This document shows, in pieces, positions 1 through 29,409 of a stretch of DNA of 64,000 bases. The DNA comes from Paramoeba atlantica. Lineage: Eukaryota; Protista; Discosea. Each line of letters opens with the position of its first letter. The first letter of the stretch is position 1. A program made the position numbers and the translations under genes. Under the pieces are notes generated by a model. That model did no database searches. It saw only the letters and a list, made by a program, of their open reading frames with translations, and was not told where the DNA came from. The DNA is taken from positions 1 through 64,000 of the forward strand of contig CDRNVI010000010.1 of the NCBI GenBank assembly GCA_977017575.1, read 5' to 3'.

Positions 1-1177
1 GACTAGGCCCAGTACTCGGAGGACCGTCCCGGACCCTCCCCTCAGGGAACGAGCTCCCTTACCCGGCTTACACCTCTTGGGTAAGCCGTGTTGACGTACA
101 GTTCGTCGACGCAGCGTGTTGGTAACAGCACGTTGGTGCCGCCTTGGAAAAGCGGAAACTGATAGAGGACGTCGGCCTCGGAACTTCCAAATCTTTCTGT
201 GAAGGGTCTGGCTTGCCAGTGGCCATCCGGAGCAATCCGGAATGATTGATTTGGGGTTGGGTGTGGGACTTGAAGGCACTCCTGGTCGCTTTCCCTTTGT
301 AGTGAGGCCGGCAGGTTGCGAGTTTTGTCGATATCGGGAATATAACCCCCAACCTGCAGGTTGTAAGGCCCACCGTCTCCAACTACAATTACACCGCTTT
401 CCTCTGTAGAAGCTACCCAAATAAAGGCCAGACCCCTCGGCCCGGCTTAAATCTCTGCTTTAAGATTGGCAGAACCTCGTTGAGACACTAAAGATTCAAC
501 TAGATCCTACACAAGCACTTGTCGAAGTAACTTCCCTACATTGGAAAGCATCATTTAGTCGAGCAACCTTCTTCCTTCTTCCTTCAGGGATCAAAGTTTC
601 GAACCCGCTCATCGCATAATTCCCGGCGGCCTCGATCTAAGAGGCTGGGCTGAGAATCGACTAGGCCCAGTACTCTGACGGCCGCCAGGGGCGCTCCCAT
701 CAGGGAACCGGTTCTCTTCTCTTCTTCTTCTTTTTGGATTGGATTCTTCTTCCCCTCCTCCCATCAGGGAGCCGGCCCCCTTACCCGGTTTAAGCCTCTT
801 GGGTGGGCCGCGTTGTCATACAAGTCGTCGAAGCAGCGTGTTGGTAACATAACGTTGGTGCCGCCTTGGAAAAGCGAAAACTGGTAGAGGACGTCGGCCT
901 TGGAACTTCCAAATCTGTCTGTGAAGGGTCTTGGTAGCATTGGGGCTGATAAATGTTTATGCGTTTATTGGTGGTAGAGGGGGGCGGCTATGCGAAAACA
1001 AAAATAAAAGGCGTTAAAAGAGACGTTTTGCATCAATGAGGAGAAATTCTTGAGAATTATTTTTGATGATGGTGGCTCTGGGGGTTTGTTATGTACAAAA
1101 TTGTTTATGATTAAGTGCTCTAGTAGGGTCCTTCGCATCTTTTTGAAATGTCTACAAAAGTAGGGAAACTTTAAGAA

Positions 1178-1936
1178 TCAAAGGGGATTTGTGGAAATTA
1201 ATGTCTTTTTTGAAGCCTCATCTTGAAACCAAAGAAACTCAGCATTAAATTTCACAAGAAACCTTTTCAACACAGTAAAATTTGAAGAAAGGAGCAAATC
1301 AAAGGTTTTCTCACCCCTTACCAGCTGATAAAGGTCGCTCATCGCAACTTCTTCCCCCATGATCTGGCTAACAGAAAATTTTAAGAGATCACTATACTCT
1401 TTTCCTCGTGTAAATCCAAAATTGGGCTTTTTTGAACTTGAATGCAAAACTATCCACCTGCAAAGGTCTTTCCCAAGGTATTGGTAAAATGGGTTGCCTG
1501 CATTTTTAACCATTCTCTGAAACTTCAAAACATTAAAAAGGTATTTCTGATCAATCTGGTTCCTCACGTAGTCGTATGAAAGGGCCCCAGATGAAGGATT
1601 AACAAAATTGTCTTGAAAAAGACCAAGAACATCTCTACATACACTTTCTGCTTCCTTCTTTAAAAGATTGTGAAACGTGATGCTCAACATGCTCGCACAA
1701 GTAAAGTTAACGGCTCCACCCTCCGGGTCTAACACGAATTGGTCCCCGCTCGACGTGGAAATTCCTATGGGTTGAGAAAGAGAAGAAAACAGGATTACGG
1801 AGGATCGTTGGAGATGTTTTGGCGTGAAGCATAACTTCTGTTTGAAAATATCGCTTTCCTCGATTTCAACATCTGGCACCCCATCCACAAATACCTTGCA
1901 TGAGGGAGGGCTGGAAACTTGAAGCCCGAAATTCAT
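1178..1936 (-). CDS. Hypothetical 252-aa protein of the tandem unit (copy 1)
   Basis: Open frame with first ATG at 1936 (the track starts at TTG 1939). Globular-looking composition, intact in 7 copies, no recognisable motif. Confidence 0.55.
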   Translation of the reverse strand: MNFGLQVSSPPSCKVFVDGVPDVEIEESDIFKQKLCFTPKHLQRSSVILFSSLSQPIGISTSSGDQFVLDPEGGAVNFTCASMLSITFHNLLKKEAESVCRDVLGLFQDNFVNPSSGALSYDYVRNQIDQKYLFNVLKFQRMVKNAGNPFYQYLGKDLCRWIVLHSSSKKPNFGFTRGKEYSDLLKFSVSQIMGEEVAMSDLYQLVRGEKTFDLLLSSNFTVLKRFLVKFNAEFLWFQDEASKKTLISTNPL

Positions 1937-2872
1937 CAATTTGTTATTTTAAAAAAGTAGCGGACTGAGTAAATATTTTTGAAAATATCAAAAAAGATGA
2001 GTTCAAGATTTGAAACCCACTTCACACTGGAGGGTCCCCTGGCAAGGTGTATCTCGTGAGTTCTCGAGCAAAACGAAACTCAGTTATCGCATGTGAAGCC
2101 GGGTAGCGCTAATTCAAGCATTTGAGTGGCAGGTTCTTTGTCCGCTCATGGTGGGGCTTTGGGCGATATCTTAATTATTATATTGCGGTGGTTGTATAAC
2201 TACCGCTCTACCCTCGATTATTGAAAAAAGAGTGAACAAAAACAGTGAAAATATAAAGAGGAACACAGGGGGGCATACCGCACGATTTTTTTTTTTGAAA
2301 TTTTTTTTTCGAAAAAAACCCGCAGAAGGGGTAGCCGGGGTTGGCGCTTATTTTCCGCCCCCTACCCGGGGGTGGCCCCCCCTCGTATCCGCAGGACGGG
2401 TCCGCCAAGTTCGGATGTTTTTGAAAAAAAATTCAACTTGGCGAAAAAACTGGCAAAGAAAATATTTTTTCAATATTCTTTCCCCTGTTGTATTTTGATA
2501 GTTCGGGGCCTATACTAGCTTTCTCGGCCTTTGGTTTCTCAAGGTATCTCTTCTTCGAGCCGTGGTGCGCCACTCAAAATGACCCATTTTCGACTGAAAT
2601 AGGTGAAAAAGTATTTTTCGGACCTCAAGGGGTCTTTTTGGGTCGGAAGAATGGTGTGGTTGGGGTCCAATCCAATATCCAATCCAAAAGACCGACGTAA
2701 AGTCGGTTGAAAAACTTAATGTTTACACCTTGAAAGCTTTCATCTATCGCTTCCACGTTCAGAGTTTATATGTGTCTGATACGGTACAAACAAACAATAT
2801 TTTTCCGATAACCTATGAATAATCCTCAAGGCATTCTAAGTTGGCAAATAAATAATTCCATCAATTCTCTCC

Positions 2873-3367
2873 CTACTTAGACGGTTTCCTATTACCTCCA
2901 GCTCTCGCAACCTTCCCTCGAAATACCCCTTCCGCCTCAGCTTTGCGCTTCGATGATGGAATGTCTCGTGCTTGCTTATTTCCAAGGGACTTCCTTTTGA
3001 GTAAGGCTTTCAAAGACCATGACGGTTGTGAATTCTCACTATCCTCCGAGTTAGCAGTTGTTTTTCTCCTTTTTTGGGTCGGAGCCCGTGCCACTTTTCG
3101 TGATGCCAAAAGTGCTAGACCATCTGCCTCCTCATTCCATTTGTTTCCAATGTGCGCCTTTACCTTGCACAAATATATATTATACGAATGGAATTTTAGT
3201 AACCTGAGCTTTGCGTCCACATCATACATTAGGTCGCCATTCTTGGGGTTGGGGTCGCATTCTTTACCCAATACGTTCGGCAGGCTTTCATTCATGCCTA
3301 CGAGTGATTTCCCACGAGCAAATATCGGATTTCGTGAATGAAAACAAATACACAAAAATGACCCCAT
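2873..3367 (-). CDS. 164-aa protein with the C-terminal half of an RNase H (RNase HI-like) and a basic tail (copy 1)
   Basis: PKNGDL...YLCKVKAHIGNKWNEEADGLA matches the RNase H C-terminal signature (KNxDL...VKAHxGxxxNExADxLA). The N-terminal catalytic acidic residues are not seen. K/R-rich tail (QKRRK, SKRK). Confidence 0.65.
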   Translation of the reverse strand: MGSFLCICFHSRNPIFARGKSLVGMNESLPNVLGKECDPNPKNGDLMYDVDAKLRLLKFHSYNIYLCKVKAHIGNKWNEEADGLALLASRKVARAPTQKRRKTTANSEDSENSQPSWSLKALLKRKSLGNKQARDIPSSKRKAEAEGVFRGKVARAGGNRKPSK

Positions 3368-3469
3368 TTTTACCCGAAAATCGGCTATTTTTGGCTATAA
3401 TATTTCAATTTAGGCTTTTCGTTAAACGCGGTAGTAGAGTTGCAAACCAGCTTTCAGGACTCTGGGGAA

Positions 3470-3470
<1 letters not shown>

Positions 3471-3500
<30 letters not shown>

Positions 3501-3540
3501 AAGAAGAAGAAGAAGAAGAAGAAGAAGAAGAAGAAGAAGA
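3471..3540 (+). repeat. (AAG)n microsatellite, one per unit (others start at 7414, 11380, 15346, 19288, 23254, 27217)
   Basis: (AAG)23 in this copy and about 21-30 in the others. It reads (CTT)n on the - strand, upstream of the RNase H-like ORF. Confidence 0.97.
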
Positions 3541-3823
3541 CACCGAGGGCTCTGCACCGTTAGGGTAGAGTCTCAAGCCACCGACCTTCATTGTCTTGCT
3601 TCCCCCTTCCAAGACGGCACTCGAAGCCTTGCGGCCCGAGCACGGGTACCCAACCGTAGCTACCAGGACGGGCGTCCAACCCCGTTGCATCGTGTAGGCT
3701 GTGTCTCATGCCTCGTTTGCGTAAGAAGCATGAATTTTCGGCGGCTGCGCTGGAGCCTGGTTCGGCTCTGCGGTTCCGGGTCGTTCCTCCAGAGGGAGGC
3801 CTTCTTCCTAGCGGACTTTTTCC

Positions 3824-4270
3824 GAGCGGTGGCGTAGCAGCAAGAATTCAAAGTTTCAAGCACGTGGTGCTCAGACGGCGAGTTCAAACCCGCTCATCGA
3901 AATATTCCTGGCGGCCTCCCTCTAAGAGGCTGGGCTAATAACCGACTAGGCCCAGTACTCGGAGGACCGTCCCGGACCCTCCCCTCAGGGAACGAGCTCC
4001 CTTACCCGGCTTACACCTCTTGGGTAAGCCGTGTTGACGTACAGTTCGTCGACGCAGCGTGTTGGTAACAGCACGTTGGTGCCGCCTTGGAAAAGCGGAA
4101 ACTGATAGAGGACGTCGGCCTCGGAACTTCCAAATCTTTCTGTGAAGGGTCTGGCTTGCCAGTGGCCATCCGGAGCAATCCGGAATGATTGATTTGGGGT
4201 TGGGTGTGGGACTTGAAGGCACTCCTGGTCGCTTTCCCTTTGTAGTGAGGCCGGCAGGTTGCGAGTTTTG
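3824..4270 (+). ncRNA. Putative structured RNA 'A' with tRNA-like Pol III head (representative copy; others at 1-327 partial, 7790, 11756, 15698, 19664, 23627, 27593)
   Basis: A-box-like TGGCGTAGCAG 3830-3840 and B-box-like GTTCAAACC 3882-3890. GAGCGG 3824-3829 pairs with CCGCTC 3890-3895. Several hairpins follow, with GUAA, GGAA and GCAA tetraloops. First T4 run at 4266-4269. Family not recognised. Confidence 0.5.
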
Positions 4271-4533
4271 TCGATATCGGGAATATAACCCCCAACCTGC
4301 AGGTTGTAAGGCCCACCGTCTCCAACTACAATTACACCGCTTTCCTCTGTAGAAGCTACCCAAATAAAGGCCAGACCCCTCGGCCCGGCTTAAATCTCTG
4401 CTTTAAGATTGGCAGAACCTCGTTGAGACACTAAAGATTCAACTAGATCCTACACAAGCACTTGTCGAAGTAACTTCCCTACATTGGAAAGCATCATTTA
4501 GTCGAGCAACCTTCTTCCTTCTTCCTTCAGGGA

Positions 4534-4873
4534 TCAAAGTTTCGAACCCGCTCATCGCATAATTCCCGGCGGCCTCGATCTAAGAGGCTGGGCTGAGAAT
4601 CGACTAGGCCCAGTACTCTGACGGCCGCCAGGGGCGCTCCCATCAGGGAACCGGTTCTCTTCTCTTCTTCTTCTTTTTGGATTGGATTCTTCTTCCCCTC
4701 CTCCCATCAGGGAGCCGGCCCCCTTACCCGGTTTAAGCCTCTTGGGTGGGCCGCGTTGTCATACAAGTCGTCGAAGCAGCGTGTTGGTAACATAACGTTG
4801 GTGCCGCCTTGGAAAAGCGAAAACTGGTAGAGGACGTCGGCCTTGGAACTTCCAAATCTGTCTGTGAAGGGTC
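4534..4873 (+). ncRNA. Diverged second copy 'B' of the structured RNA (representative; others start at 591, 8500, 12466, 16408, 20374, 24337, 28303)
   Basis: Colinear with A 3848-4152, with shared blocks such as AACCCGCTCATCG, TCTAAGAGGCTGGGCT, CGACTAGGCCCAGTACTC and GCAGCGTGTTGGTAACA. It has a 29-nt deletion in the head and a pyrimidine-rich insertion at 4660-4700. Confidence 0.45.
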
Positions 4874-5120
4874 TTGGTAGCATTGGGGCTGATAAATGTT
4901 TATGCGTTTATTGGTGGTAGAGGGGGGCGGCTATGCGAAAACAAAAATAAAAGGCGTTAAAAGAGACGTTTTGCATCAATGAGGAGAAATTCTTGAGAAT
5001 TATTTTTGATGATGGTGGCTCTGGGGGTTTGTTATGTACAAAATTGTTTATGATTAAGTGCTCTAGTAGGGTCCTTCGCATCTTTTTGAAATGTCTACAA
5101 AAGTAGGGAAACTTTAAGAA

Positions 5121-5879
5121 TCAAAGGGGATTTGTGGAAATTAATGTCTTTTTTGAAGCCTCATCTTGAAACCAAAGAAACTCAGCATTAAATTTCACAA
5201 GAAACCTTTTCAACACAGTAAAATTTGAAGAAAGGAGCAAATCAAAGGTTTTCTCACCCCTTACCAGCTGATAAAGGTCGCTCATCGCAACTTCTTCCCC
5301 CATGATCTGGCTAACAGAAAATTTTAAGAGATCACTATACTCTTTTCCTCGTGTAAATCCAAAATTGGGCTTTTTTGAACTTGAATGCAAAACTATCCAC
5401 CTGCAAAGGTCTTTCCCAAGGTATTGGTAAAATGGGTTGCCTGCATTTTTAACCATTCTCTGAAACTTCAAAACATTAAAAAGGTATTTCTGATCAATCT
5501 GGTTCCTCACGTAGTCGTATGAAAGGGCCCCAGATGAAGGATTAACAAAATTGTCTTGAAAAAGACCAAGAACATCTCTACATACACTTTCTGCTTCCTT
5601 CTTTAAAAGATTGTGAAACGTGATGCTCAACATGCTCGCACAAGTAAAGTTAACGGCTCCACCCTCCGGGTCTAACACGAATTGGTCCCCGCTCGACGTG
5701 GAAATTCCTATGGGTTGAGAAAGAGAAGAAAACAGGATTACGGAGGATCGTTGGAGATGTTTTGGCGTGAAGCATAACTTCTGTTTGAAAATATCGCTTT
5801 CCTCGATTTCAACATCTGGCACCCCATCCACAAATACCTTGCATGAGGGAGGGCTGGAAACTTGAAGCCCGAAATTCAT
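5121..5879 (-). CDS. Hypothetical 252-aa protein (copy 2)
   Basis: Same translation as copy 1. Confidence 0.55.
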   Translation of the reverse strand: MNFGLQVSSPPSCKVFVDGVPDVEIEESDIFKQKLCFTPKHLQRSSVILFSSLSQPIGISTSSGDQFVLDPEGGAVNFTCASMLSITFHNLLKKEAESVCRDVLGLFQDNFVNPSSGALSYDYVRNQIDQKYLFNVLKFQRMVKNAGNPFYQYLGKDLCRWIVLHSSSKKPNFGFTRGKEYSDLLKFSVSQIMGEEVAMSDLYQLVRGEKTFDLLLSSNFTVLKRFLVKFNAEFLWFQDEASKKTLISTNPL

Positions 5880-6815
5880 CAATTTGTTATTTTAAAAAAG
5901 TAGCGGACTGAGTAAATATTTTTGAAAATATCAAAAAAGATGAGTTCAAGATTTGAAACCCACTTCACACTGGAGGGTCCCCTGGCAAGGTGTATCTCGT
6001 GAGTTCTCGAGCAAAACGAAACTCAGTTATCGCATGTGAAGCCGGGTAGCGCTAATTCAAGCATTTGAGTGGCAGGTTCTTTGTCCGCTCATGGTGGGGC
6101 TTTGGGCGATATCTTAATTATTATATTGCGGTGGTTGTATAACTACCACTCTACCCTCGATTATTGAAAAAAGAGTGAACAAAAACAGTGAAAATATAAA
6201 GAGGAACACAGGGGGGCATACCGCACGATTTTTTTTTTTGAAATTTTTTTTTCGAAAAAAACCCGCAGAAGGGGTAGCCGGGGTTGGCGCTTATTTTCCG
6301 CCCCCTACCCGGGGGTGGCCCCCCCTCGTATCCGCAGGACGGGTCCGCCAAGTTCGGATGTTTTTGAAAAAAAATTCAACTTGGCGAAAAAACTGGCAAA
6401 GAAAATATTTTTTCAATATTCTTTCCCCTGTTGTATTTTGATAGTTCGGGGCCTATACTAGCTTTCTCGGCCTTTGGTTTCTCAAGGTATCTCTTCTTCG
6501 AGCCGTGGTGCGCCACTCAAAATGACCCATTTTCGACTGAAATAGGTGAAAAAGTATTTTTCGGACCTCAAGGGGTCTTTTTGGGTCGGAAGAATGGTGT
6601 GGTTGGGGTCCAATCCAATATCCAATCCAAAAGACCGACGTAAAGTCGGTTGAAAAACTTAATGTTTACACCTTGAAAGCTTTCATCTATCGCTTCCACG
6701 TTCAGAGTTTATATGTGTCTGATACGGTACAAACAAACAATATTTTTCCGATAACCTATGAATAATCCTCAAGGCATTCTAAGTTGGCAAAGAAATAATT
6801 CCATCAATTCTCTCC

Positions 6816-7310
6816 CTACTTAGACGGTTTCCTATTACCTCCAGCTCTCGCAACCTTCCCTCGAAATACCCCTTCCGCCTCAGCTTTGCGCTTCGATGAT
6901 GGAATGTCTCGTGCTTGCTTATTTCCAAGGGACTTCCTTTTGAGTAAGGCTTTCAAAGACCATGACGGTTGTGAATTCTCACTATCCTCCGAGTTAGCAG
7001 TTGTTTTTCTCCTTTTTTGGGTCGGAGCCCGTGCCACTTTTCGTGATGCCAAAAGTGCTAGACCATCTGCCTCCTCATTCCATTTGTTTCCAATGTGCGC
7101 CTTTACCTTGCACAAATATATATTATACGAATGGAATTTTAGTAACCTGAGCTTTGCGTCCACATCATACATTAGGTCGCCATTCTTGGGGTTGGGGTCG
7201 CATTCTTTACCCAATACGTTCGGCAGGCTTTCATTCATGCCTACGAGTGATTTCCCACGAGCAAATATCGGATTTCGTGAATGAAAACAAATACACAAAA
7301 ATGACCCCAT
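6816..7310 (-). CDS. RNase H-like 164-aa ORF (copy 2)
   Basis: Identical translation to copy 1. Confidence 0.65.
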   Translation of the reverse strand: MGSFLCICFHSRNPIFARGKSLVGMNESLPNVLGKECDPNPKNGDLMYDVDAKLRLLKFHSYNIYLCKVKAHIGNKWNEEADGLALLASRKVARAPTQKRRKTTANSEDSENSQPSWSLKALLKRKSLGNKQARDIPSSKRKAEAEGVFRGKVARAGGNRKPSK

Positions 7311-7412
7311 TTTTACCCGAAAATCGGCTATTTTTGGCTATAATATTTCAATTTAGGCTTTTCGTTAAACGCGGTAGTAGAGTTGCAAACCAGCTTTCAG
7401 GACTCTGGGGAA

Positions 7413-7443
<31 letters not shown>

Positions 7444-9086: not shown

Positions 9087-9845
9087 TCAAAGGGGATTTG
9101 TGGAAATTAATGTCTTTTTTGAAGCCTCATCTTGAAACCAAAGAAACTCAGCATTAAATTTCACAAGAAACCTTTTCAACACAGTAAAATTTGAAGAAAG
9201 GAGCAAATCAAAGGTTTTCTCACCCCTTACCAGCTGATAAAGGTCGCTCATCGCAACTTCTTCCCCCATGATCTGGCTAACAGAAAATTTTAAGAGATCA
9301 CTATACTCTTTTCCTCGTGTAAATCCAAAATTGGGCTTTTTTGAACTTGAATGCAAAACTATCCACCTGCAAAGGTCTTTCCCAAGGTATTGGTAAAATG
9401 GGTTGCCTGCATTTTTAACCATTCTCTGAAACTTCAAAACATTAAAAAGGTATTTCTGATCAATCTGGTTCCTCACGTAGTCGTATGAAAGGGCCCCAGA
9501 TGAAGGATTAACAAAATTGTCTTGAAAAAGACCAAGAACATCTCTACATACACTTTCTGCTTCCTTCTTTAAAAGATTGTGAAACGTGATGCTCAACATG
9601 CTCGCACAAGTAAAGTTAACGGCTCCACCCTCCGGGTCTAACACGAATTGGTCCCCGCTCGACGTGGAAATTCCTATGGGTTGAGAAAGAGAAGAAAACA
9701 GGATTACGGAGGATCGTTGGAGATGTTTTGGCGTGAAGCATAACTTCTGTTTGAAAATATCGCTTTCCTCGATTTCAACATCTGGCACCCCATCCACAAA
9801 TACCTTGCATGAGGGAGGGCTGGAAACTTGAAGCCCGAAATTCAT
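9087..9845 (-). CDS. Hypothetical 252-aa protein (copy 3)
   Basis: Same translation as copy 1. Confidence 0.55.
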   Translation of the reverse strand: MNFGLQVSSPPSCKVFVDGVPDVEIEESDIFKQKLCFTPKHLQRSSVILFSSLSQPIGISTSSGDQFVLDPEGGAVNFTCASMLSITFHNLLKKEAESVCRDVLGLFQDNFVNPSSGALSYDYVRNQIDQKYLFNVLKFQRMVKNAGNPFYQYLGKDLCRWIVLHSSSKKPNFGFTRGKEYSDLLKFSVSQIMGEEVAMSDLYQLVRGEKTFDLLLSSNFTVLKRFLVKFNAEFLWFQDEASKKTLISTNPL

Positions 9846-10781
9846 CAATTTGTTATTTTAAAAAAGTAGCGGACTGAGTAAATATTTTTGAAAATATCAA
9901 AAAAGATGAGTTCAAGATTTGAAACCCACTTCACACTGGAGGGTCCCCTGGCAAGGTGTATCTCGTGAGTTCTCGAGCAAAACGAAACTCAGTTATCGCA
10001 TGTGAAGCCGGGTAGCGCTAATTCAAGCATTTGAGTGGCAGGTTCTTTGTCCGCTCATGGTGGGGCTTTGGGCGATATCTTAATTATTATATTGCGGTGG
10101 TTGTATAACTACCACTCTACCCTCGATTATTGAAAAAAGAGTGAACAAAAACAGTGAAAATATAAAGAGGAACACAGGGGGGCATACCGCACGATTTTTT
10201 TTTTTGAAATTTTTTTTTCGAAAAAAACCCGCAGAAGGGGTAGCCGGGGTTGGCGCTTATTTTCCGCCCCCTACCCGGGGGTGGCCCCCCCTCGTATCCG
10301 CAGGACGGGTCCGCCAAGTTCGGATGTTTTTGAAAAAAAATTCAACTTGGCGAAAAAACTGGCAAAGAAAATATTTTTTCAATATTCTTTCCCCTGTTGT
10401 ATTTTGATAGTTCGGGGCCTATACTAGCTTTCTCGGCCTTTGGTTTCTCAAGGTATCTCTTCTTCGAGCCGTGGTGCGCCACTCAAAATGACCCATTTTC
10501 GACTGAAATAGGTGAAAAAGTATTTTTCGGACCTCAAGGGGTCTTTTTGGGTCGGAAGAATGGTGTGGTTGGGGTCCAATCCAATATCCAATCCAAAAGA
10601 CCGACGTAAAGTCGGTTGAAAAACTTAATGTTTACACCTTGAAAGCTTTCATCTATCGCTTCCACGTTCAGAGTTTATATGTGTCTGATACGGTACAAAC
10701 AAACAATATTTTTCCGATAACCTATGAATAATCCTCAAGGCATTCTAAGTTGGCAAAGAAATAATTCCATCAATTCTCTCC

Positions 10782-11276: not shown

Positions 11277-11378
11277 TTTTACCCGAAAATCGGCTATTTT
11301 TGGCTATAATATTTCAATTTAGGCTTTTCGTTAAACGCGGTAGTAGAGTTGCAAACCAGCTTTCAGGACTCTGGGGAA

Positions 11379-11409
<31 letters not shown>

Positions 11410-13052: not shown

Positions 13053-13811
13053 TCAAAGGGGATTTGTGGAAATTAATGTCTTTTTTGAAGCCTCATCTTG
13101 AAACCAAAGAAACTCAGCATTAAATTTCACAAGAAACCTTTTCAACACAGTAAAATTTGAAGAAAGGAGCAAATCAAAGGTTTTCTCACCCCTTACCAGC
13201 TGATAAAGGTCGCTCATCGCAACTTCTTCCCCCATGATCTGGCTAACAGAAAATTTTAAGAGATCACTATACTCTTTTCCTCGTGTAAATCCAAAATTGG
13301 GCTTTTTTGAACTTGAATGCAAAACTATCCACCTGCAAAGGTCTTTCCCAAGGTATTGGTAAAATGGGTTGCCTGCATTTTTAACCATTCTCTGAAACTT
13401 CAAAACATTAAAAAGGTATTTCTGATCAATCTGGTTCCTCACGTAGTCGTATGAAAGGGCCCCAGATGAAGGATTAACAAAATTGTCTTGAAAAAGACCA
13501 AGAACATCTCTACATACACTTTCTGCTTCCTTCTTTAAAAGATTGTGAAACGTGATGCTCAACATGCTCGCACAAGTAAAGTTAACGGCTCCACCCTCCG
13601 GGTCTAACACGAATTGGTCCCCGCTCGACGTGGAAATTCCTATGGGTTGAGAAAGAGAAGAAAACAGGATTACGGAGGATCGTTGGAGATGTTTTGGCGT
13701 GACGCATAACTTCTGTTTGAAAATATCGCTTTCCTCGATTTCAACATCTGGCACCCCATCCACAAATACCTTGCATGAGGGAGGGCTGGAAACTTGAAGC
13801 CCGAAATTCAT
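13053..13811 (-). CDS. Hypothetical 252-aa protein (copy 4, F>V variant)
   Basis: KLCVTPK instead of KLCFTPK. Confidence 0.55.
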   Translation of the reverse strand: MNFGLQVSSPPSCKVFVDGVPDVEIEESDIFKQKLCVTPKHLQRSSVILFSSLSQPIGISTSSGDQFVLDPEGGAVNFTCASMLSITFHNLLKKEAESVCRDVLGLFQDNFVNPSSGALSYDYVRNQIDQKYLFNVLKFQRMVKNAGNPFYQYLGKDLCRWIVLHSSSKKPNFGFTRGKEYSDLLKFSVSQIMGEEVAMSDLYQLVRGEKTFDLLLSSNFTVLKRFLVKFNAEFLWFQDEASKKTLISTNPL

Positions 13812-14747
13812 CAATTTGTTATTTTAAAAAAGTAGCGGACTGAGTAAATATTTTTGAAAATATCAAAAAAGATGAGTTCAAGATTTGAAACCCACTTCAC
13901 ACTGGAGGGTCCCCTGGCAAGGTGTATCTCGTGAGTTCTCGAGCAAAACGAAACTCAGTTATCGCATGTGAAGCCGGGTAGCGCTAATTCAAGCATTTGA
14001 GTGGCAGGTTCTTTGTCCGCTCATGGTGGGGCTTTGGGCGATATCTTAATTATTATATTGCGGTGGTTGTATAACTACCACTCTACCCTCGATTATTGAA
14101 AAAAGAGTGAACAAAAACAGTGAAAATATAAAGAGGAACACAGGGGGGCATACCGCACGATTTTTTTTTTTGAAATTTTTTTTTCGAAAAAAACCCGCAG
14201 AAGGGGTAGCCGGGGTTGGCGCTTATTTTCCGCCCCCTACCCGGGGGTGGCCCCCCCTCGTATCCGCAGGACGGGTCCGCCAAGTTCGGATGTTTTTGAA
14301 AAAAAATTCAACTTGGCGAAAAAACTGGCAAAGAAAATATTTTTTCAATATTCTTTCCCCTGTTGTATTTTGATAGTTCGGGGCCTATACTAGCTTTCTC
14401 GGCCTTTGGTTTCTCAAGGTATCTCTTCTTCGAGCCGTGGTGCGCCACTCAAAATGACCCATTTTCGACTGAAATAGGTGAAAAAGTATTTTTCGGACCT
14501 CAAGGGGTCTTTTTGGGTCGGAAGAATGGTGTGGTTGGGGTCCAATCCAATATCCAATCCAAAAGACCGACGTAAAGTCGGTTGAAAAACTTAATGTTTA
14601 CACCTTGAAAGCTTTCATCTATCGCTTCCACGTTCAGAGTTTATATGTGTCTGATACGGTACAAACAAACAATATTTTTCCGATAACCTATGAATAATCC
14701 TCAAGGCATTCTAAGTTGGCAAAGAAATAATTCCATCAATTCTCTCC

Positions 14748-15344: not shown

Positions 15345-15375
<31 letters not shown>

Positions 15376-16994: not shown

Positions 16995-17753
16995 TCAAAG
17001 GGGATTTGTGGAAATTAATGTCTTTTTTGAAGCCTCATCTTGAAACCAAAGAAACTCAGCATTAAATTTCACAAGAAACCTTTTCAACACAGTAAAATTT
17101 GAAGAAAGGAGCAAATCAAAGGTTTTCTCACCCCTTACCAGCTGATAAAGGTCGCTCATCGCAACTTCTTCCCCCATGATCTGGCTAACAGAAAATTTTA
17201 AGAGATCACTATACTCTTTTCCTCGTGTAAATCCAAAATTGGGCTTTTTTGAACTTGAATGCAAAACTATCCACCTGCAAAGGTCTTTCCCAAGGTATTG
17301 GTAAAATGGGTTGCCTGCATTTTTAACCATTCTCTGAAACTTCAAAACATTAAAAAGGTATTTCTGATCAATCTGGTTCCTCACGTAGTCGTATGAAAGG
17401 GCCCCAGATGAAGGATTAACAAAATTGTCTTGAAAAAGACCAAGAACATCTCTACATACACTTTCTGCTTCCTTCTTTAAAAGATTGTGAAACGTGATGC
17501 TCAACATGCTCGCACAAGTAAAGTTAACGGCTCCACCCTCCGGGTCTAACACGAATTGGTCCCCGCTCGACGTGGAAATTCCTATGGGTTGAGAAAGAGA
17601 AGAAAACAGGATTACGGAGGATCGTTGGAGATGTTTTGGCGTGAAGCATAACTTCTGTTTGAAAATATCGCTTTCCTCGATTTCAACATCTGGCACCCCA
17701 TCCACAAATACCTTGCATGAGGGAGGGCTGGAAACTTGAAGCCCGAAATTCAT
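16995..17753 (-). CDS. Hypothetical 252-aa protein (copy 5)
   Basis: Same translation as copy 1. Confidence 0.55.
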   Translation of the reverse strand: MNFGLQVSSPPSCKVFVDGVPDVEIEESDIFKQKLCFTPKHLQRSSVILFSSLSQPIGISTSSGDQFVLDPEGGAVNFTCASMLSITFHNLLKKEAESVCRDVLGLFQDNFVNPSSGALSYDYVRNQIDQKYLFNVLKFQRMVKNAGNPFYQYLGKDLCRWIVLHSSSKKPNFGFTRGKEYSDLLKFSVSQIMGEEVAMSDLYQLVRGEKTFDLLLSSNFTVLKRFLVKFNAEFLWFQDEASKKTLISTNPL

Positions 17754-18689
17754 CAATTTGTTATTTTAAAAAAGTAGCGGACTGAGTAAATATTTTTGAA
17801 AATATCAAAAAAGATGAGTTCAAGATTTGAAACCCACTTCACACTGGAGGGTCCCCTGGCAAGGTGTATCTCGTGAGTTCTCGAGCAAAACGAAACTCAG
17901 TTATCGCATGTGAAGCCGGGTAGCGCTAATTCAAGCATTTGAGTGGCAGGTTCTTTGTCCGCTCATGGTGGGGCTTTGGGCGATATCTTAATTATTATAT
18001 TGCGGTGGTTGTATAACTACCGCTCTACCCTCGATTATTGAAAAAAGAGTGAACAAAAACAGTGAAAATATAAAGAGGAACACAGGGGGGCATACCGCAC
18101 GATTTTTTTTTTTGAAATTTTTTTTTCGAAAAAAACCCGCAGAAGGGGTAGCCGGGGTTGGCGCTTATTTTCCGCCCCCTACCCGGGGGTGGCCCCCCCT
18201 CGTATCCGCAGGACGGGTCCGCCAAGTTCGGATGTTTTTGAAAAAAAATTCAACTTGGCGAAAAAACTGGGAAAGAAAATATTTTTTCAATATTCTTTCC
18301 CCTGTTGTATTTTGATAGTTCGGGGCCTATACTAGCTTTCTCGGCCTTTGGTTTCTCAAGGTATCTCTTCTTCGAGCCGTGGTGCGCCACTCAAAATGAC
18401 CCATTTTCGACTGAAATAGGTGAAAAAGTATTTTTCGGACCTCAAGGGGTCTTTTTGGGTCGGAAGAATGGTGTGGTTGGGGTCCAATCCAATATCCAAT
18501 CCAAAAGACCGACGTAAAGTCGGTTGAAAAACTTAATGTTTACACCTTGAAAGCTTTCATCTATCGCTTCCACGTTCAGAGTTTATATGTGTCTGATACG
18601 GTACAAACAAACAATATTTTTCCGATAACCTATGAATAATCCTCAAGGCATTCTAAGTTGGCAAAGAAATAATTCCATCAATTCTCTCC

Positions 18690-19184: not shown

Positions 19185-19292
19185 TTTTACCCGAAAATCG
19201 GCTATTTTTGGCTATAATATTTCAATTTAGGCTTTTCGTTAAACGCGGTAGTAGAGTTGCAAACCAGCTTTCAGGACTCTGGGGAATAAGAA

Positions 19293-19323
<31 letters not shown>

Positions 19324-20960: not shown

Positions 20961-21719
20961 TCAAAGGGGATTTGTGGAAATTAATGTCTTTTTTGAAGCC
21001 TCATCTTGAAACCAAAGAAACTCAGCATTAAATTTCACAAGAAACCTTTTCAACACAGTAAAATTTGAAGAAAGGAGCAAATCAAAGGTTTTCTCACCCC
21101 TTACCAGCTGATAAAGGTCGCTCATCGCAACTTCTTCCCCCATGATCTGGCTAACAGAAAATTTTAAGAGATCACTATACTCTTTTCCTCGTGTAAATCC
21201 AAAATTGGGCTTTTTTGAACTTGAATGCAAAACTATCCACCTGCAAAGGTCTTTCCCAAGGTATTGGTAAAATGGGTTGCCTGCATTTTTAACCATTCTC
21301 TGAAACTTCAAAACATTAAAAAGGTATTTCTGATCAATCTGGTTCCTCACGTAGTCGTATGAAAGGGCCCCAGATGAAGGATTAACAAAATTGTCTTGAA
21401 AAAGACCAAGAACATCTCTACATACACTTTCTGCTTCCTTCTTTAAAAGATTGTGAAACGTGATGCTCAACATGCTCGCACAAGTAAAGTTAACGGCTCC
21501 ACCCTCCGGGTCTAACACGAATTGGTCCCCGCTCGACGTGGAAATTCCTATGGGTTGAGAAAGAGAAGAAAACAGGATTACGGAGGATCGTTGGAGATGT
21601 TTTGGCGTGACGCATAACTTCTGTTTGAAAATATCGCTTTCCTCGATTTCAACATCTGGCACCCCATCCACAAATACCTTGCATGAGGGAGGGCTGGAAA
21701 CTTGAAGCCCGAAATTCAT
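20961..21719 (-). CDS. Hypothetical 252-aa protein (copy 6, F>V variant)
   Basis: KLCVTPK variant. Confidence 0.55.
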   Translation of the reverse strand: MNFGLQVSSPPSCKVFVDGVPDVEIEESDIFKQKLCVTPKHLQRSSVILFSSLSQPIGISTSSGDQFVLDPEGGAVNFTCASMLSITFHNLLKKEAESVCRDVLGLFQDNFVNPSSGALSYDYVRNQIDQKYLFNVLKFQRMVKNAGNPFYQYLGKDLCRWIVLHSSSKKPNFGFTRGKEYSDLLKFSVSQIMGEEVAMSDLYQLVRGEKTFDLLLSSNFTVLKRFLVKFNAEFLWFQDEASKKTLISTNPL

Positions 21720-22655
21720 CAATTTGTTATTTTAAAAAAGTAGCGGACTGAGTAAATATTTTTGAAAATATCAAAAAAGATGAGTTCAAGATTTGAAACC
21801 CACTTCACACTGGAGGGTCCCCTGGCAAGGTGTATCTCGTGAGTTCTCGAGCAAAACGAAACTCAGTTATCGCATGTGAAGCCGGGTAGCGCTAATTCAA
21901 GCATTTGAGTGGCAGGTTCTTTGTCCGCTCATGGTGGGGCTTTGGGCGATATCTTAATTATTATATTGCGGTGGTTGTATAACTACCACTCTACCCTCGA
22001 TTATTGAAAAAAGAGTGAACAAAAACAGTGAAAATATAAAGAGGAACACAGGGGGGCATACCGCACGATTTTTTTTTTTGAAATTTTTTTTTCGAAAAAA
22101 ACCCGCAGAAGGGGTAGCCGGGGTTGGCGCTTATTTTCCGCCCCCTACCCGGGGGTGGCCCCCCCTCGTATCCGCAGGACGGGTCCGCCAAGTTCGGATG
22201 TTTTTGAAAAAAAATTCAACTTGGCGAAAAAACTGGCAAAGAAAATATTTTTTCAATATTCTTTCCCCTGTTGTATTTTGATAGTTCGGGGCCTATACTA
22301 GCTTTCTCGGCCTTTGGTTTCTCAAGGTATCTCTTCTTCGAGCCGTGGTGCGCCACTCAAAATGACCCATTTTCGACTGAAATAGGTGAAAAAGTATTTT
22401 TCGGACCTCAAGGGGTCTTTTTGGGTCGGAAGAATGGTGTGGTTGGGGTCCAATCCAATATCCAATCCAAAAGACCGACGTAAAGTCGGTTGAAAAACTT
22501 AATGTTTACACCTTGAAAGCTTTCATCTATCGCTTCCACGTTCAGAGTTTATATGTGTCTGATACGGTACAAACAAACAATATTTTTCCGATAACCTATG
22601 AATAATCCTCAAGGCATTCTAAGTTGGCAAAGAAATAATTCCATCAATTCTCTCC

Positions 22656-23150: not shown

Positions 23151-23258
23151 TTTTACCCGAAAATCGGCTATTTTTGGCTATAATATTTCAATTTAGGCTT
23201 TTCGTTAAACGCGGTAGTAGAGTTGCAAACCAGCTTTCAGGACTCTGGGGAATAAGAA

Positions 23259-23289
<31 letters not shown>

Positions 23290-24923
23290 AAGAAGAAGAA
23301 GAAGAAGAAGAAGAAGAAGAAGAAGAAGAAGAAGAAGAAAAGACACCGAGGGCTCTGCACCGTTAGGGTAGAGTCTCAAGCCACCGACCTTCATTGTCTT
23401 GCTGCCCCCTTCAAAGACGGCACTCGAAGCCTTGCGGCCCGAGCACGGGTACCCAACCGTAGCTACCAGGACGGGCGTCCAACCCCGTTGCATCGTGTAG
23501 GCTGTGTCTCATGCCTCGTTTGCGTAAGCAGCATGAATTTTCGGCGGCTGCGCTGGAGCCTGGTTCGGCTCTGCGGTTCCGGGTCGTTCCTCCAGAGGGA
23601 GGCCTTCTTCCTAGCGGACTTTTTCCGAGCGGTGGCGTAGCAGCAAGAATTCAAAGTTTCAAGCACGTGGTGCTCAGACGGCGAGTTCAAACCCGCTCAT
23701 CGAAATATTCCTGGCGGCCTCCCTCTAAGAGGCTGGGCTAATAACCGACTAGGCCCAGTACTCGGAGGACCGTCCCGGACCCTCCCCTCAGGGAACGAGC
23801 TCCCTTACCCGGCTTACACCTCTTGGGTAAGCCGTGTTGACGTACAGTTCGTCGACGCAGCGTGTTGGTAACAGCACGTTGGTGCCGCCTTGGAAAAGCG
23901 GAAACTGATAGAGGACGTCGGCCTCGGAACTTCCAAATCTTTCTGTGAAGGGTCTGGCTTGCCAGTGGCCATCCGGAGCAATCCGGAATGATTGATTTGG
24001 GGTTGGGTGTGGGACTTGAAGGCACTCCTGGTCGCTTTCCCTTTGTAGTGAGGCCGGCAGGTTGCGAGTTTTGTCGATATCGGGAATATAACCCCCAACC
24101 TGCAGGTTGTAAGGCCCACCGTCTCCAACTACAATTACACCGCTTTCCTCTGTAGAAGCTACCCAAATAAAGGCCAGACCCCTCGGCCCGGCTTAAATCT
24201 CTGCTTTAAGATTGGCAGAACCTCGTTGAGACACTAAAGATTCAACTAGAGCCTACACAAGCACTTGTCGAAGTAACTTCCCTACATTGGAAAGCATCAT
24301 TTAGTCGAGCAACCTTCTTCCTTCTTCCTTCAGGGATCAAAGTTTCGAACCCGCTCATCGCATAATTCCCGGCGGCCTCGATCTAAGAGGCTGGGCTGAG
24401 AATCGACTAGGCCCAGTACTCTGACGGCCGCCAGGGGCGCTCCCATCAGGGAACCGGTTCTCTTCTCTTCTTCTTCTTTTTGGATTGGATTCTTCTTCCC
24501 CTCCTCCCATCAGGGAGCCGGCCCCCTTACCCGGTTTAAGCCTCTTGGGTGGGCCGCGTTGTCATACAAGTCGTCGAAGCAGCGTGTTGGTAACATAACG
24601 TTGGTGCCGCCTTGGAAAAGCGAAAACTGGTAGAGGACGTCGGCCTTGGAACTTCCAAATCTGTCTGTGAAGGGTCTTGGTAGCATTGGGGCTGATAAAT
24701 GTTTATGCGTTTATTGGTGGTAGAGGGGGGCGGCTATGCGAAAACAAAAATAAAAGGCGTTAAAAGAGACGTTTTGCATCAATGAGGAGAAATTCTTGAG
24801 AATTATTTTTGATGATGGTGGCTCTGGGGGTTTGTTATGTACAAAATTGTTTATGATTAAGTGCTCTAGTAGGGTCCTTCGCATCTTTTTGAAATGTCTA
24901 CAAAAGTAGGGAAACTTTAAGAA

Positions 24924-25682
24924 TCAAAGGGGATTTGTGGAAATTAATGTCTTTTTTGAAGCCTCATCTTGAAACCAAAGAAACTCAGCATTAAATTTCA
25001 CAAGAAACCTTTTCAACACAGTAAAATTTGAAGAAAGGAGCAAATCAAAGGTTTTCTCACCCCTTACCAGCTGATAAAGGTCGCTCATCGCAACTTCTTC
25101 CCCCATGATCTGGCTAACAGAAAATTTTAAGAGATCACTATACTCTTTTCCTCGTGTAAATCCAAAATTGGGCTTTTTTGAACTTGAATGCAAAACTATC
25201 CACCTGCAAAGGTCTTTCCCAAGGTATTGGTAAAATGGGTTGCCTGCATTTTTAACCATTCTCTGAAACTTCAAAACATTAAAAAGGTATTTCTGATCAA
25301 TCTGGTTCCTCACGTAGTCGTATGAAAGGGCCCCAGATGAAGGATTAACAAAATTGTCTTGAAAAAGACCAAGAACATCTCTACATACACTTTCTGCTTC
25401 CTTCTTTAAAAGATTGTGAAACGTGATGCTCAACATGCTCGCACAAGTAAAGTTAACGGCTCCACCCTCCGGGTCTAACACGAATTGGTCCCCGCTCGAC
25501 GTGGAAATTCCTATGGGTTGAGAAAGAGAAGAAAACAGGATTACGGAGGATCGTTGGAGATGTTTTGGCGTGACGCATAACTTCTGTTTGAAAATATCGC
25601 TTTCCTCGATTTCAACATCTGGCACCCCATCCACAAATACCTTGCATGAGGGAGGGCTGGAAACTTGAAGCCCGAAATTCAT
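24924..25682 (-). CDS. Hypothetical 252-aa protein (copy 7, F>V variant)
   Basis: KLCVTPK variant. Confidence 0.55.
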   Translation of the reverse strand: MNFGLQVSSPPSCKVFVDGVPDVEIEESDIFKQKLCVTPKHLQRSSVILFSSLSQPIGISTSSGDQFVLDPEGGAVNFTCASMLSITFHNLLKKEAESVCRDVLGLFQDNFVNPSSGALSYDYVRNQIDQKYLFNVLKFQRMVKNAGNPFYQYLGKDLCRWIVLHSSSKKPNFGFTRGKEYSDLLKFSVSQIMGEEVAMSDLYQLVRGEKTFDLLLSSNFTVLKRFLVKFNAEFLWFQDEASKKTLISTNPL

Positions 25683-26618
25683 CAATTTGTTATTTTAAAA
25701 AAGTAGCGGACTGAGTAAATATTTTTGAAAATATCAAAAAAGATGAGTTCAAGATTTGAAACCCACTTCACACTGGAGGGTCCCCTGGCAAGGTGTATCT
25801 CGTGAGTTCTCGAGCAAAACGAAACTCAGTTATCGCATGTGAAGCCGGGTAGCGCTAATTCAAGCATTTGAGTGGCAGGTTCTTTGTCCGCTCATGGTGG
25901 GGCTTTGGGCGATATCTTAATTATTATATTGCGGTGGTTGTATAACTACCACTCTACCCTCGATTATTGAAAAAAGAGTGAACAAAAACAGTGAAAATAT
26001 AAAGAGGAACACAGGGGGGCATACCGCACGATTTTTTTTTTTGAAATTTTTTTTTCGAAAAAAACCCGCAGAAGGGGTAGCCGGGGTTGGCGCTTATTTT
26101 CCGCCCCCTACCCGGGGGTGGCCCCCCCTCGTATCCGCAGGACGGGTCCGCCAAGTTCGGATGTTTTTGAAAAAAAATTCAACTTGGCGAAAAAACTGGC
26201 AAAGAAAATATTTTTTCAATATTCTTTCCCCTGTTGTATTTTGATAGTTCGGGGCCTATACTAGCTTTCTCGGCCTTTGGTTTCTCAAGGTATCTCTTCT
26301 TCGAGCCGTGGTGCGCCACTCAAAATGACCCATTTTCGACTGAAATAGGTGAAAAAGTATTTTTCGGACCTCAAGGGGTCTTTTTGGGTCGGAAGAATGG
26401 TGTGGTTGGGGTCCAATCCAATATCCAATCCAAAAGACCGACGTAAAGTCGGTTGAAAAACTTAATGTTTACACCTTGAAAGCTTTCATCTATCGCTTCC
26501 ACGTTCAGAGTTTATATGTGTCTGATACGGTACAAACAAACAATATTTTTCCGATAACCTATGAATAATCCTCAAGGCATTCTAAGTTGGCAAAGAAATA
26601 ATTCCATCAATTCTCTCC

Positions 26619-27113
26619 CTACTTAGACGGTTTCCTATTACCTCCAGCTCTCGCAACCTTCCCTCGAAATACCCCTTCCGCCTCAGCTTTGCGCTTCGAT
26701 GATGGAATGTCTCGTGCTTGCTTATTTCCAAGGGACTTCCTTTTGAGTAAGGCTTTCAAAGACCATGACGGTTGTGAATTCTCACTATCCTCCGAGTTAG
26801 CAGTTGTTTTTCTCCTTTTTTGGGTCGGAGCCCGTGCCACTTTTCGTGATGCCAAAAGTGCTAGACCATCTGCCTCCTCATTCCATTTGTTTCCAATGTG
26901 CGCCTTTACCTTGCACAAATATATATTATACGAATGGAATTTTAGTAACCTGAGCTTTGCGTCCACATCATACATTAGGTCGCCATTCTTGGGGTTGGGG
27001 TCGCATTCTTTACCCAATACGTTCGGCAGGCTTTCATTCATGCCTACGAGTGATTTCCCACGAGCAAATATCGGATTTCGTGAATGAAAACAAATACACA
27101 AAAATGACCCCAT
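26619..27113 (-). CDS. RNase H-like 164-aa ORF (copy 7)
   Basis: Identical translation. Confidence 0.65.
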   Translation of the reverse strand: MGSFLCICFHSRNPIFARGKSLVGMNESLPNVLGKECDPNPKNGDLMYDVDAKLRLLKFHSYNIYLCKVKAHIGNKWNEEADGLALLASRKVARAPTQKRRKTTANSEDSENSQPSWSLKALLKRKSLGNKQARDIPSSKRKAEAEGVFRGKVARAGGNRKPSK

Positions 27114-27215
27114 TTTTACCCGAAAATCGGCTATTTTTGGCTATAATATTTCAATTTAGGCTTTTCGTTAAACGCGGTAGTAGAGTTGCAAACCAGCTTT
27201 CAGGACTCTGGGGAA

Positions 27216-27246
<31 letters not shown>

Positions 27247-28889
27247 AAGAAGAAGAAGAAGAAGAAGAAGAAGAAGAAGAAGAAGAAGAAGAAGAAGAAG
27301 AAGAAAAGACACCGAGGGCTCTGCACCGTTAGGGTAGAGTCTCAAGCCACCGACCTTCATTGTCTTGCTGCCCCCTTCAAAGACGGCACTCGAAGCCTTG
27401 CGGCCCGAGCACGGGTACCCAACCGTAGCTACCAGGACGGGCGTCCAACCCCGTTGCATCGTGTAGGCTGTGTCTCATGCCTCGTTTGCGTAAGCAGCAT
27501 GAATTTTCGGCGGCTGCGCTGGAGCCTGGTTCGGCTCTGCGGTTCCGGGTCGTTCCTCCAGAGGGAGGCCTTCTTCCTAGCGGACTTTTTCCGAGCGGTG
27601 GCGTAGCAGCAAGAATTCAAAGTTTCAAGCACGTGGTGCTCAGACGGCGAGTTCAAACCCGCTCATCGAAATATTCCTGGCGGCCTCCCTCTAAGAGGCT
27701 GGGCTAATAACCGACTAGGCCCAGTACTCGGAGGACCGTCCCGGACCCTCCCCTCAGGGAACGAGCTCCCTTACCCGGCTTACACCTCTTGGGTAAGCCG
27801 TGTTGACGCACAGTTCGTCGACGCAGCGTGTTGGTAACAGCACGTTGGTGCCGCCTTGGAAAAGCGGAAACTGATAGAGGACGTCGGCCTCGGAACTTCC
27901 AAATCTTTCTGTGAAGGGTCTGTCTTGCCAGTGGCCATCCGGAGCAATCCGGAATGATTGATTTGGGGTTGGGTGTGGGACTTGAAGGCACTCCTGGTCG
28001 CTTTCCCTTTGTAGTGAGGCCGGCAGGTTGCGAGTTTTGTCGATATCGGGAATATAACCCCCAACCTGCAGGTTGTAAGGCCCACCGTCTCCAACTACAA
28101 TTACACCGCTTTCCTCTGTAGAAGCTACCCAAATAAAGGCCAGACCCCTCGGCCCGGCTTAAATCTCTGCTTTAAGATTGGCAGAACCTCGTTGAGACAC
28201 TAAAGATTCAACTAGAGCCTACACAAGCACTTGTCGAAGTAACTTCCCTACATTGGAAAGCATCATTTAGTCGAGCAACCTTCTTCCTTCTTCCTTCAGG
28301 GATCAAAGTTTCGAACCCGCTCATCGCATAATTCCCGGCGGCCTCGATCTAAGAGGCTGGGCTGAGAATCGACTAGGCCCAGTACTCTGACGGCCGCCAG
28401 GGGCGCTCCCATCAGGGAACCGGTTCTCTTCTCTTCTTCTTCTTTTTGGATTGGATTCTTCTTCCCCTCCTCCCATCAGGGAGCCGGCCCCCTTACCCGG
28501 TTTAAGCCTCTTGGGTGGGCCGCGTTGTCATACAAGTCGTCGAAGCAGCGTGTTGGTAACATAACGTTGGTGCCGCCTTGGAAAAGCGAAAACTGGTAGA
28601 GGACGTCGGCCTTGGAACTTCCAAATCTGTCTGTGAAGGGTCTTGGTAGCATTGGGGCTGATAAATGTTTATGCGTTTATTGGTGGTAGAGGGGGGCGGC
28701 TATTCGAAAACAAAAATAAAAGGCGTTAAAAGAGACGTTTTGCATCAATGAGGAGAAATTCTTGAGAATTATTTTTGATGATGGTGGCTCTGGGGGTTTG
28801 TTATGTACAAAATTGTTTATGATTAAGTGCTCTAGTAGGGTCCTTCGCATCTTTTTGAAATGTCTACAAAAGTAGGGAAACTTTAAGAA

Positions 28890-29409
28890 TCAAAGGGGAT
28901 TTGTGGAAATTAATGTCTTTTTTGAAGCCTCATCTTGAAACCAAAGAAACTCAGCATTAAATTTCACAAGAAACCTTTTCAACACAGTAAAATTTGAAGA
29001 AAGGAGCAAATCAAAGGTTTTCTCACCCCTTACCAGCTGATAAAGGTCGCTCATCGCAACTTCTTCCCCCATGATCTGGCTAACAGAAAATTTTAAGAGA
29101 TCACTATACTCTTTTCCTCGTGTAAATCCAAAATTGGGCTTTTTTGAACTTGAATGCAAAACTATCCACCTGCAAAGGTCTTTCCCAAGGTATTGGTAAA
29201 ATGGGTTGCCTGCATTTTTAACCATTCTCTGAAACTTCAAAACATTAAAAAGGTATTTCTGATCAATCTGGTTCCTCACGTAGTCGTATGAAAGGGCCCC
29301 AGATGAAGGATTAACAAAATTGTCTTGAAAAAGACCAAGAACATCTCTACATACACTTTCTGCTTCCTTCTTTAAAAGATTGTGAAACGTGATGCTCAAC
29401 ATGCTCGCA
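28890..29409 (-). pseudogene. 5'-truncated copy 8 of the 252-aa ORF
   Basis: About 80 N-terminal codons are replaced by the 18-bp satellite. In this frame the satellite has a TGA in each unit, so there is no fusion. Confidence 0.8.

Follow-up and report, generated by a model that had tools for sequence, protein, structure and literature searches.

The first 29,409 nucleotides of the window (the 64,000 nucleotides at the start of contig CDRNVI010000010.1 in the assembly GCA_977017575.1, filed under Paramoeba atlantica; G000:C10:1-64000, contig C10 hereafter) are occupied by a tandem array in which each unit carries one gene for a conserved protein of 252 amino acids. This gene is the only member of its family in the genome, where it is present in at least 32 intact copies. 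We consider it probable that the array is a lineage-specific tandem amplification of this single gene, which would serve to raise its dosage within a polycistronic unit. The preliminary description of the same DNA had proposed either a module made of a structured RNA pair of RNA polymerase III (Pol III) type, an RNase H-like open reading frame (ORF) and an orphan ORF, or a non-autonomous retro-element array at a chromosome end. The analysis reveals that the RNA pair derives from a short interspersed element (SINE) and the RNase H-like ORF from a long interspersed element (LINE), so that both match known types of mobile element; the supposed orphan is the only array-specific ORF of the unit.

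As first described, the units are nearly identical and arranged head-to-tail. Seven full units and one partial unit were found, with starts at positions 1, 3944, 7910, 11876, 15818, 19784, 23747 and 27713 and an array end at 29409. Identity between units is above 99.7%: the seven full units are distinguished by 9 single-position differences (8 substitutions and one 1-bp indel) and by the length of an (AAG)n microsatellite. The order of the parts on the plus strand and the two intact ORFs on the minus strand also agree with the preliminary description, as does the lack of other coding content, since no reverse transcriptase, endonuclease or rRNA was found in the unit with Pfam (on three minus-strand ORFs), ARAGORN and Rfam. 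The assembly comprises 45.7 Mb in 248 contigs, and a second contig, C105 (100,945 bp), is composed of the array from end to end and contains 25 further intact copies of the gene in addition to the 7 of C10. As C10 and C105 both end within the array, the number of 32 copies is a lower bound. Three units of C105 are about 0.4 kb longer than the others (about 4.35-4.39 kb).

The breaks of both contigs inside the array might suggest a repeat that was collapsed or over-expanded during assembly. We regard such an artefact as extremely unlikely. The same array is present in the independent ENA assembly ERZ24900291, with a unit of ~4.38 kb, and sequence of the array is contained in runs of three other studies. 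Moreover, single-nucleotide, microsatellite and SINE-insertion variants are distinct between units and their order is consistent. On its right side the array breaks off within a gene copy, where it meets an 18-bp satellite directly, and on the left it continues beyond the contig start. We saw no telomere repeat, and the location at a chromosome end is therefore unsupported; the contig end is a break inside the array, of which C105 holds more. The bounding satellite creates long spurious ORFs in several frames because 18 is divisible by 3.

About 59% of the unit is repeat-derived. Searches against the genome show that the array-specific parts are limited to 4341-4540 and 4875-6124, the latter including the gene. 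The whole unit occurs only in the array, with the exception of one scrambled relic on contig C58 (G000:C58:8081-13307; loci L001, L010 and L014). This relic contains codons 1-189 of the gene at 95% identity, the spacer upstream of it including an extra SINE, and several SINEs in both orientations.

All 32 copies of the gene are open, with an amino-acid identity of 98-100%. Contrary to its description as an orphan, the encoded protein belongs to a family for which a profile scan of 1.84 billion protein representatives detected 18 representatives. The full-length homologues display 29-34% identity and a strongly conserved C-terminal motif. Those with a name come from Perkinsela sp. (XU18_1888) and Papus ankaliazontas, to which one MMETSP transcript is added; no trypanosomatid homologue was detected among the searches made. 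In relatives the gene is not amplified: it is single-copy in Perkinsela and in one other large assembly, downstream of the genes for an ABC1 kinase and a proteasome subunit. In the genome studied here, homologues are confined to 7 full copies and 1 truncated copy on C10, 25 copies on C105 and one fragment on C58, and a search with a distant family member as query found no second member of the family. The 252-residue ORF is thus a real conserved kinetoplastid gene and the sole member of its family in this genome.

No Pfam family matched the 253-residue form of the ORF. The protein was modelled with AlphaFold2. An earlier run with five sequences gave a poor model (predicted local distance difference test, pLDDT, of 56), while the alignment of 19 sequences gave a model with a pLDDT of 87, in which beta strands are predicted over residues 13-91, followed by two winged-helix domains. 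Foldseek retrieved tandem winged-helix proteins (ESCRT-II, STK19, Cdt1, MAGE/Nse3 and Egalitarian) with weak E-values. With VIA-align, residues 91-168 of the model matched the LOTUS domain of MARF1 (Z 7.9) and residues 172-253 matched many generic winged helix-turn-helix domains (Z 8-9). In the ESM Atlas, the feature search gave no usable match and the shape search was uninformative, with template-modelling (TM) scores of at most 0.36. The protein is predicted to consist of a beta-sandwich-like N-terminal domain and two LOTUS-like winged helices. From the two predicted winged-helix domains, it probably binds nucleic acid, and the modelled fold supports a scaffold binding nucleic acids or proteins, nothing narrower.

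The genome is of the kinetoplastid type, as indicated by a one-strand gene cluster and by the 3' signature of the kinetoplastid spliced leader (SL), which has 181 occurrences in the genome versus 0 for the reversed control. At these sites (for instance loci L021-L024, near position 1500), the 28 nt of the SL 3' part are followed by GT and then by more than 250 nt of conserved sequence. SL-like sites are dispersed over many contigs and their upstream flanks differ. To the right of the array, the 14 long ORFs between 35950 and 63643 are all on the minus strand, as is the array gene. Since the array has the same strand as these neighbours, it is most likely read through in one polycistronic unit. 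Each unit would then yield one mRNA by trans-splicing at a pyrimidine tract and AG upstream of the ATG: a pyrimidine-rich stretch followed by AG lies about 30 nt before the ATG on the gene strand and would fit a trans-splice site. Polyadenylation would take place about 190 nt past the stop codon. The dose of the gene would be set by copy number, as in other kinetoplastid arrays, and we infer from this arrangement that dosage was the reason for the amplification.

Public sequencing runs are consistent with such a transcript. Eight runs were listed, of which seven contain all or part of the array stretch, and four of them were compared with one unit of 3966 nt; the runs are stored as contigs. 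Three of these runs cover 28-29 of the 30 bins of the unit. The fourth, X7, a small run from 2015, covers only a single stretch with one contig of 971 nt, which spans the ORF plus 17 nt before and 192 nt after it. This extent fits a probable mRNA of the array gene.

Several observations weigh against the amplification of the gene for its dosage. The label of X7 as RNA is a guess, and the strand, the ends, a spliced leader and the level of expression cannot be seen in its contigs; the sites of splicing and polyadenylation were read from the sequence alone; and the fold matches of the protein are generic. The variation among the copies points in the same direction. In 27 gene copies of this genome, all 9 variable sites are non-synonymous, and when 4 copies of the other assembly are added the ratio becomes 17 non-synonymous to 3 synonymous, versus a neutral expectation of about 3.75:1. 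The dN/dS ratio is thus not below 1, and purifying selection on the array copies is not apparent. A comparison of the two assemblies gives an identity of 98.4% for the gene and 98-99.6% for its flanks, so that the gene is not better conserved than the spacers.

These values are those expected from a neutral or selfish macrosatellite, expanded by unequal crossing-over with no benefit, in which the gene copies are redundant and drifting. The existence of units with and without an extra SINE, indicating an ongoing turnover, and the truncation of one gene copy by the bounding satellite agree with such an expansion. However, the family to which the gene belongs is conserved across lineages of kinetoplastids and has no other member in this genome; all copies of the gene are open and a probable mRNA contig exists. 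The selection test itself has little power, as it is based on 20 variable sites only, and homogenisation within arrays blurs its outcome. The long-term conservation of the gene is clear, whereas recent constraint on individual copies is undetectable; for this last reason we keep a neutral expansion as a serious, though unlikely, alternative to the amplification of the gene for its dosage.

The part of the unit described as structured RNA A is an aged copy of a tRNA-derived SINE, antisense to the gene. With a young copy of this element as query, 494 first-look candidate places were obtained in the genome, of which 40 were scored. Most of the scored copies have the full length (372-393 nt), with 97-99% identity; the element is non-coding, with a length of about 375 nt. 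The copy of the array is 93-95% identical to the young dispersed copies and has 3 changes in the A box. In 20 copies studied with their flanks, target-site duplications (TSDs) of 8-14 bp are present, with variable short repeats at the 5' junction, and at the 3' end a short hairpin precedes TTTGGA/T-run/GGA repeats. The head is indeed tRNA-like, as the preliminary description had recognized, and has Pol III A and B boxes. Its origin from a tRNA was established when it was aligned directly with the tRNA-Leu genes of the same cell: 60 of 85 positions match tRNA-Leu(TAG) in a colinear manner (z = 10 against shuffles), and the positions of the A box and the B box are retained. The other tRNA-Leu genes have z values of 2.8-7.8, tRNA-Ser 3.9, and the tRNAs with no long variable arm remain below 2.2. 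The head is decayed, as ARAGORN called no tRNA on the window and the SINE loci and Rfam, at E up to 1 on the young SINE copies, gave no match.

The RNA of element A folds better than shuffled sequences (z -3.6), as had been proposed, and that of B less so (z -2.0). No non-coding RNA (ncRNA) family was matched in the whole window with Rfam 15 at the gathering score; a permissive search of one unit (E up to 5) gave best matches with E of at least 0.13, nothing usable. The structure of RNA A is thus real, but it belongs to a mobile element, as A is a SINE with hundreds of copies. The diverged copy B is older SINE debris, its two fragments being 81-89% identical to SINE copies. An additional SINE copy, with a 7-bp TSD at 6463-6469, is found in every unit of the other assembly and in the C58 relic, and is lacking in the window's own units. 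Judged from their length, the three longer units of C105 fit the same extra insertion. As this SINE is present in some units only, it has been active recently. We also considered element A as the carrier of the 'Pr77' 5' signature of ingi/L1Tc. This candidate was rejected: the LINE copy that was inspected does not contain A in its 5' region, and A has a tRNA-type head of its own.

The ORF of 164 residues has an RNase H signature at its C-terminus, as the preliminary description had noted. Its Pfam match to RNase_H (PF00075) is limited to profile positions 109-137 of 141, with 16.3 bits for a cut-off of 25.8. A complete RNase H domain is not present in the ORF and the remainder of the domain is found only in full LINE copies. 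The corresponding region, 6613-7187, is a dispersed repeat with 97-99% identity on many contigs. The dispersed loci have long ORFs with the domains RVT_1 and a complete RNase_H, and an ORF for an endonuclease (Exo_endo_phos) upstream. The presence of an apurinic/apyrimidinic endonuclease (APE), a reverse transcriptase (RT) and RNase H in these copies identifies a non-LTR (long terminal repeat) retrotransposon, that is, a LINE. Its nearest protein relatives are environmental sequences with 39-59% identity, and the protein search gave no named ingi or L1Tc match. The fragment of the unit is flanked by the perfect 10-bp direct repeat GGTTGGGGTC at 6601-6610 and 7190-7199. In the locus L018, the flanks 6233-6610 and 7190-7348 adjoin each other directly and the LINE piece is absent. 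This contiguity and the direct repeat show that a 5'-truncated LINE was inserted into a repeat, here named R2. The 164-residue ORF is a chance chimera, in which the LINE 3' fragment is fused to 41 codons of R2. An LTR element with (AAG)n as its polypurine tract was also considered and rejected: the strand of the RNase H piece is the opposite one, and the piece originates from an APE-type LINE.

The 3' end of the LINE consists of a hairpin followed by TTTTGGA(TTGGA)n. Because its tail is of the same kind (hairpin and repeats) as that of the SINE, the resident LINE is likely the partner of element A; the likeness lies in the kind of tail and not in a long shared sequence. The nested insertions, together with the polymorphic one described above, show recent activity of both the tRNA-Leu SINE and the LINE paired with it. 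R2 itself is a high-copy repeat: with the query 5900-6612, 1211 first-look candidates were obtained, array copies included, and the matches outside the array cover 6125-6610. R2 is also tandemly repeated by itself on another contig (G000:C21:734589-739493), in a short series spaced at ~0.94 kb. Element A is likewise nested in a repeat, R1, whose left part is the 'GC-rich block' of the preliminary description; contigs of two runs join position 3792 to 4196 without the SINE.

With the parts of the unit identified, a functional module held at high copy number, in which the Pol III RNA pair A/B would cooperate with two proteins, one RNase H-like and one orphan, appears very improbable, in spite of the box-like motifs in the head of A, the folding of both RNAs and the two ORFs that are intact across all units. 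Element A belongs to hundreds of dispersed SINEs with TSDs, and its array copy is aged and mutated in the A box; B has no A-box half; and the RNase H ORF amounts to the last 29 of 141 profile positions, below the cut-off, in a LINE fragment with its own TSD. The probable RNA run X7 covers neither the RNA pair nor this ORF, and no Rfam family is matched. The parts are separate, independently dispersed repeats, each with insertion scars.

For the retro-element array envisaged in the preliminary description, the presence of non-autonomous retro-elements in the unit holds, whereas the unit is not one element. A single composite non-autonomous element, arrayed at a chromosome end in the manner of subtelomeric element arrays, would account for the high content of repeats and for the position of the array at a contig end. 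We attribute very little probability to it: the unit contains pieces from no fewer than four distinct families, each with insertion scars of its own, and occurs as a whole only in the array, apart from the scrambled C58 relic; neither a telomere repeat nor a true end of the array is found at the start of C10. Under the amplification of the gene, the spacer would have gathered its mobile elements (SINE A in R1, the SINE fragments B and the LINE 3' end in R2) before the array was formed, since these insertions are common to all units and hence older than the amplification. The pieces would then have been copied passively along with the gene, and the 164-residue ORF and the RNA pair would be by-products of the insertions rather than working parts. 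The coordinates of all features are given in Table 1.

Table 1. Features of the array and of its right boundary. Positions are those of the window, and the parts of the unit are given for one copy.
Feature	Position	Strand	Remarks
Tandem array	1-29409		7 complete units (3942-3966 bp) and 1 partial unit; extends past the contig start
(AAG)n microsatellite	3470-3540	+	(CTT)n on the gene strand; main cause of the variation in unit length
R1, left part ('GC-rich block')	3541-3798		copies ~89% identical, found on many contigs
SINE A ('structured RNA A' with tRNA-like head)	3828-4197	+	aged copy of a tRNA-Leu-derived SINE, antisense to the gene
R1, right part	4198-4340		copies elsewhere 91-94% identical
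SINE fragments B ('copy B')	4541-4874	+	two older SINE-related fragments, 4541-4661 and 4696-4874, without the A-box half
Coverage by run X7	4929-5899	-	single 971-nt contig
Array gene, reference copy	5121-5882	-	253 residues from TTG, 252 from ATG at 5879
Further intact gene copies	1178-1939, 9087-9848, 13053-13814, 16995-17756, 20961-21722, 24924-25685	-	
Truncated gene copy	28890-29402	-	furthest upstream in the direction of transcription; 5'-truncated (residues 81-253 only) at the satellite junction
R2, left part	6125-6610		dispersed high-copy repeat; copies outside the array 84-97% identical
LINE 3' end, 5'-truncated	6611-7189	-	579 bp; genome search, TSD read from sequence
164-residue 'RNase H-like' ORF	6816-7310	-	first 41 codons from R2, the rest from the C-terminal tail of the LINE ORF
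R2, right part	7190-7354		contiguous with the left part in L018
18-bp satellite	29429-31093		92 copies, 86% match; right boundary of the array

Concerning the neighbouring genes, 11 of the 14 minus-strand ORFs have Pfam domains (SMC, RING, ENTH, ribosomal L11, lipase, NUDIX, EF-hand, WD40, AAA and LRR). A CIAO1-like protein encoded by a neighbour has best foreign matches with an identity of only about 30%, which gave no taxonomic placement of the host. The sole sizeable plus-strand ORF between the array and this cluster is an ORF of 309 residues (32695-33624), which has a weak match to DUF6125 and includes a 96-bp tandem repeat of 7.5 copies at 32797-33516. The search for tRNA genes also revealed particular groups of contigs in the assembly. 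The top-scoring tRNA genes are found in many identical copies on contigs C137-C185 (such as C143, C144 and C149), which may be foreign, possibly bacterial. Many short contigs (C95-C135 and C221) share one pair of A+T-rich, type-II tRNA-like matches with a distance of about 1.8 kb, and resemble multiple copies of one small, possibly organellar, molecule. Finally, six tRNA genes (Leu, Gly, Glu, Arg, Ile and SeC) are grouped on both strands within ~720 bp at L101 (G000:C19:13125-16181).

The assignment of the parts removes a false lead, as an apparently new module of ncRNA and RNase H is a gene array with hitch-hiking transposon pieces. An uncharacterised kinetoplastid protein family gains a confident predicted fold, together with a species in which it is massively amplified, which makes the array protein a candidate abundant protein, of structural or nucleic-acid-binding type. 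A more specific and rather doubtful suggestion is that it is a very abundant nucleic-acid binder of non-trypanosomatid kinetoplastids, for instance a packaging factor of chromatin, kinetoplast DNA or messenger ribonucleoprotein. If so, a need in bulk would explain why the only gene was expanded to more than 32 copies over ~130 kb, and the excess of amino-acid changes among the copies could reflect a diversifying use rather than drift. The array also offers dated nested insertions and a polymorphic SINE insertion, and concerted evolution in a kinetoplastid is naturally recorded by the variants of its units.

In Trypanosoma brucei, tandem arrays raise the dosage where genes have no individual promoters (PMC1855330). 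The array described here resembles the arrays of tubulin, histone, HSP70 and other genes of trypanosomatids (those of T. brucei are surveyed in PMC1855330) in its near-identical head-to-tail units with one intact ORF each, in its orientation on the strand of the surrounding polycistronic unit, in the homogenisation of its copies and in its presumed role in dosage. It differs from them in that the amplified family is uncharacterised and was not found in trypanosomatids by the searches made. The spacer is unusually long (3.2 kb for a gene of 0.76 kb) and about three quarters of it are repeat-derived, and no purifying selection is apparent in the copies.

Among mobile elements, UnaSINE1 and UnaL2 are an example of a tRNA-derived SINE paired with a LINE by a matched 3' tail. 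Element A is similar to SINEs of this type by its tRNA-Leu-like head with A and B boxes, its non-coding body of ~375 nt, its LINE-like end made of a hairpin and short repeats, its TSDs of 8-14 bp and its several hundred young copies; it is distinguished by its kinetoplastid host and by a Pol III transcription that is only putative. The described kinetoplastid retroposons RIME, NARTc and SIDER are deletion derivatives of LINEs, and one literature search found no description of a tRNA-headed SINE in kinetoplastids. As for the partner LINE, it shares with the non-LTR elements ingi and L1Tc the order APE, RT and RNase H and the 5'-truncated insertions with TSDs, but it ends in (TTGGA)n after a hairpin and not in poly(A).

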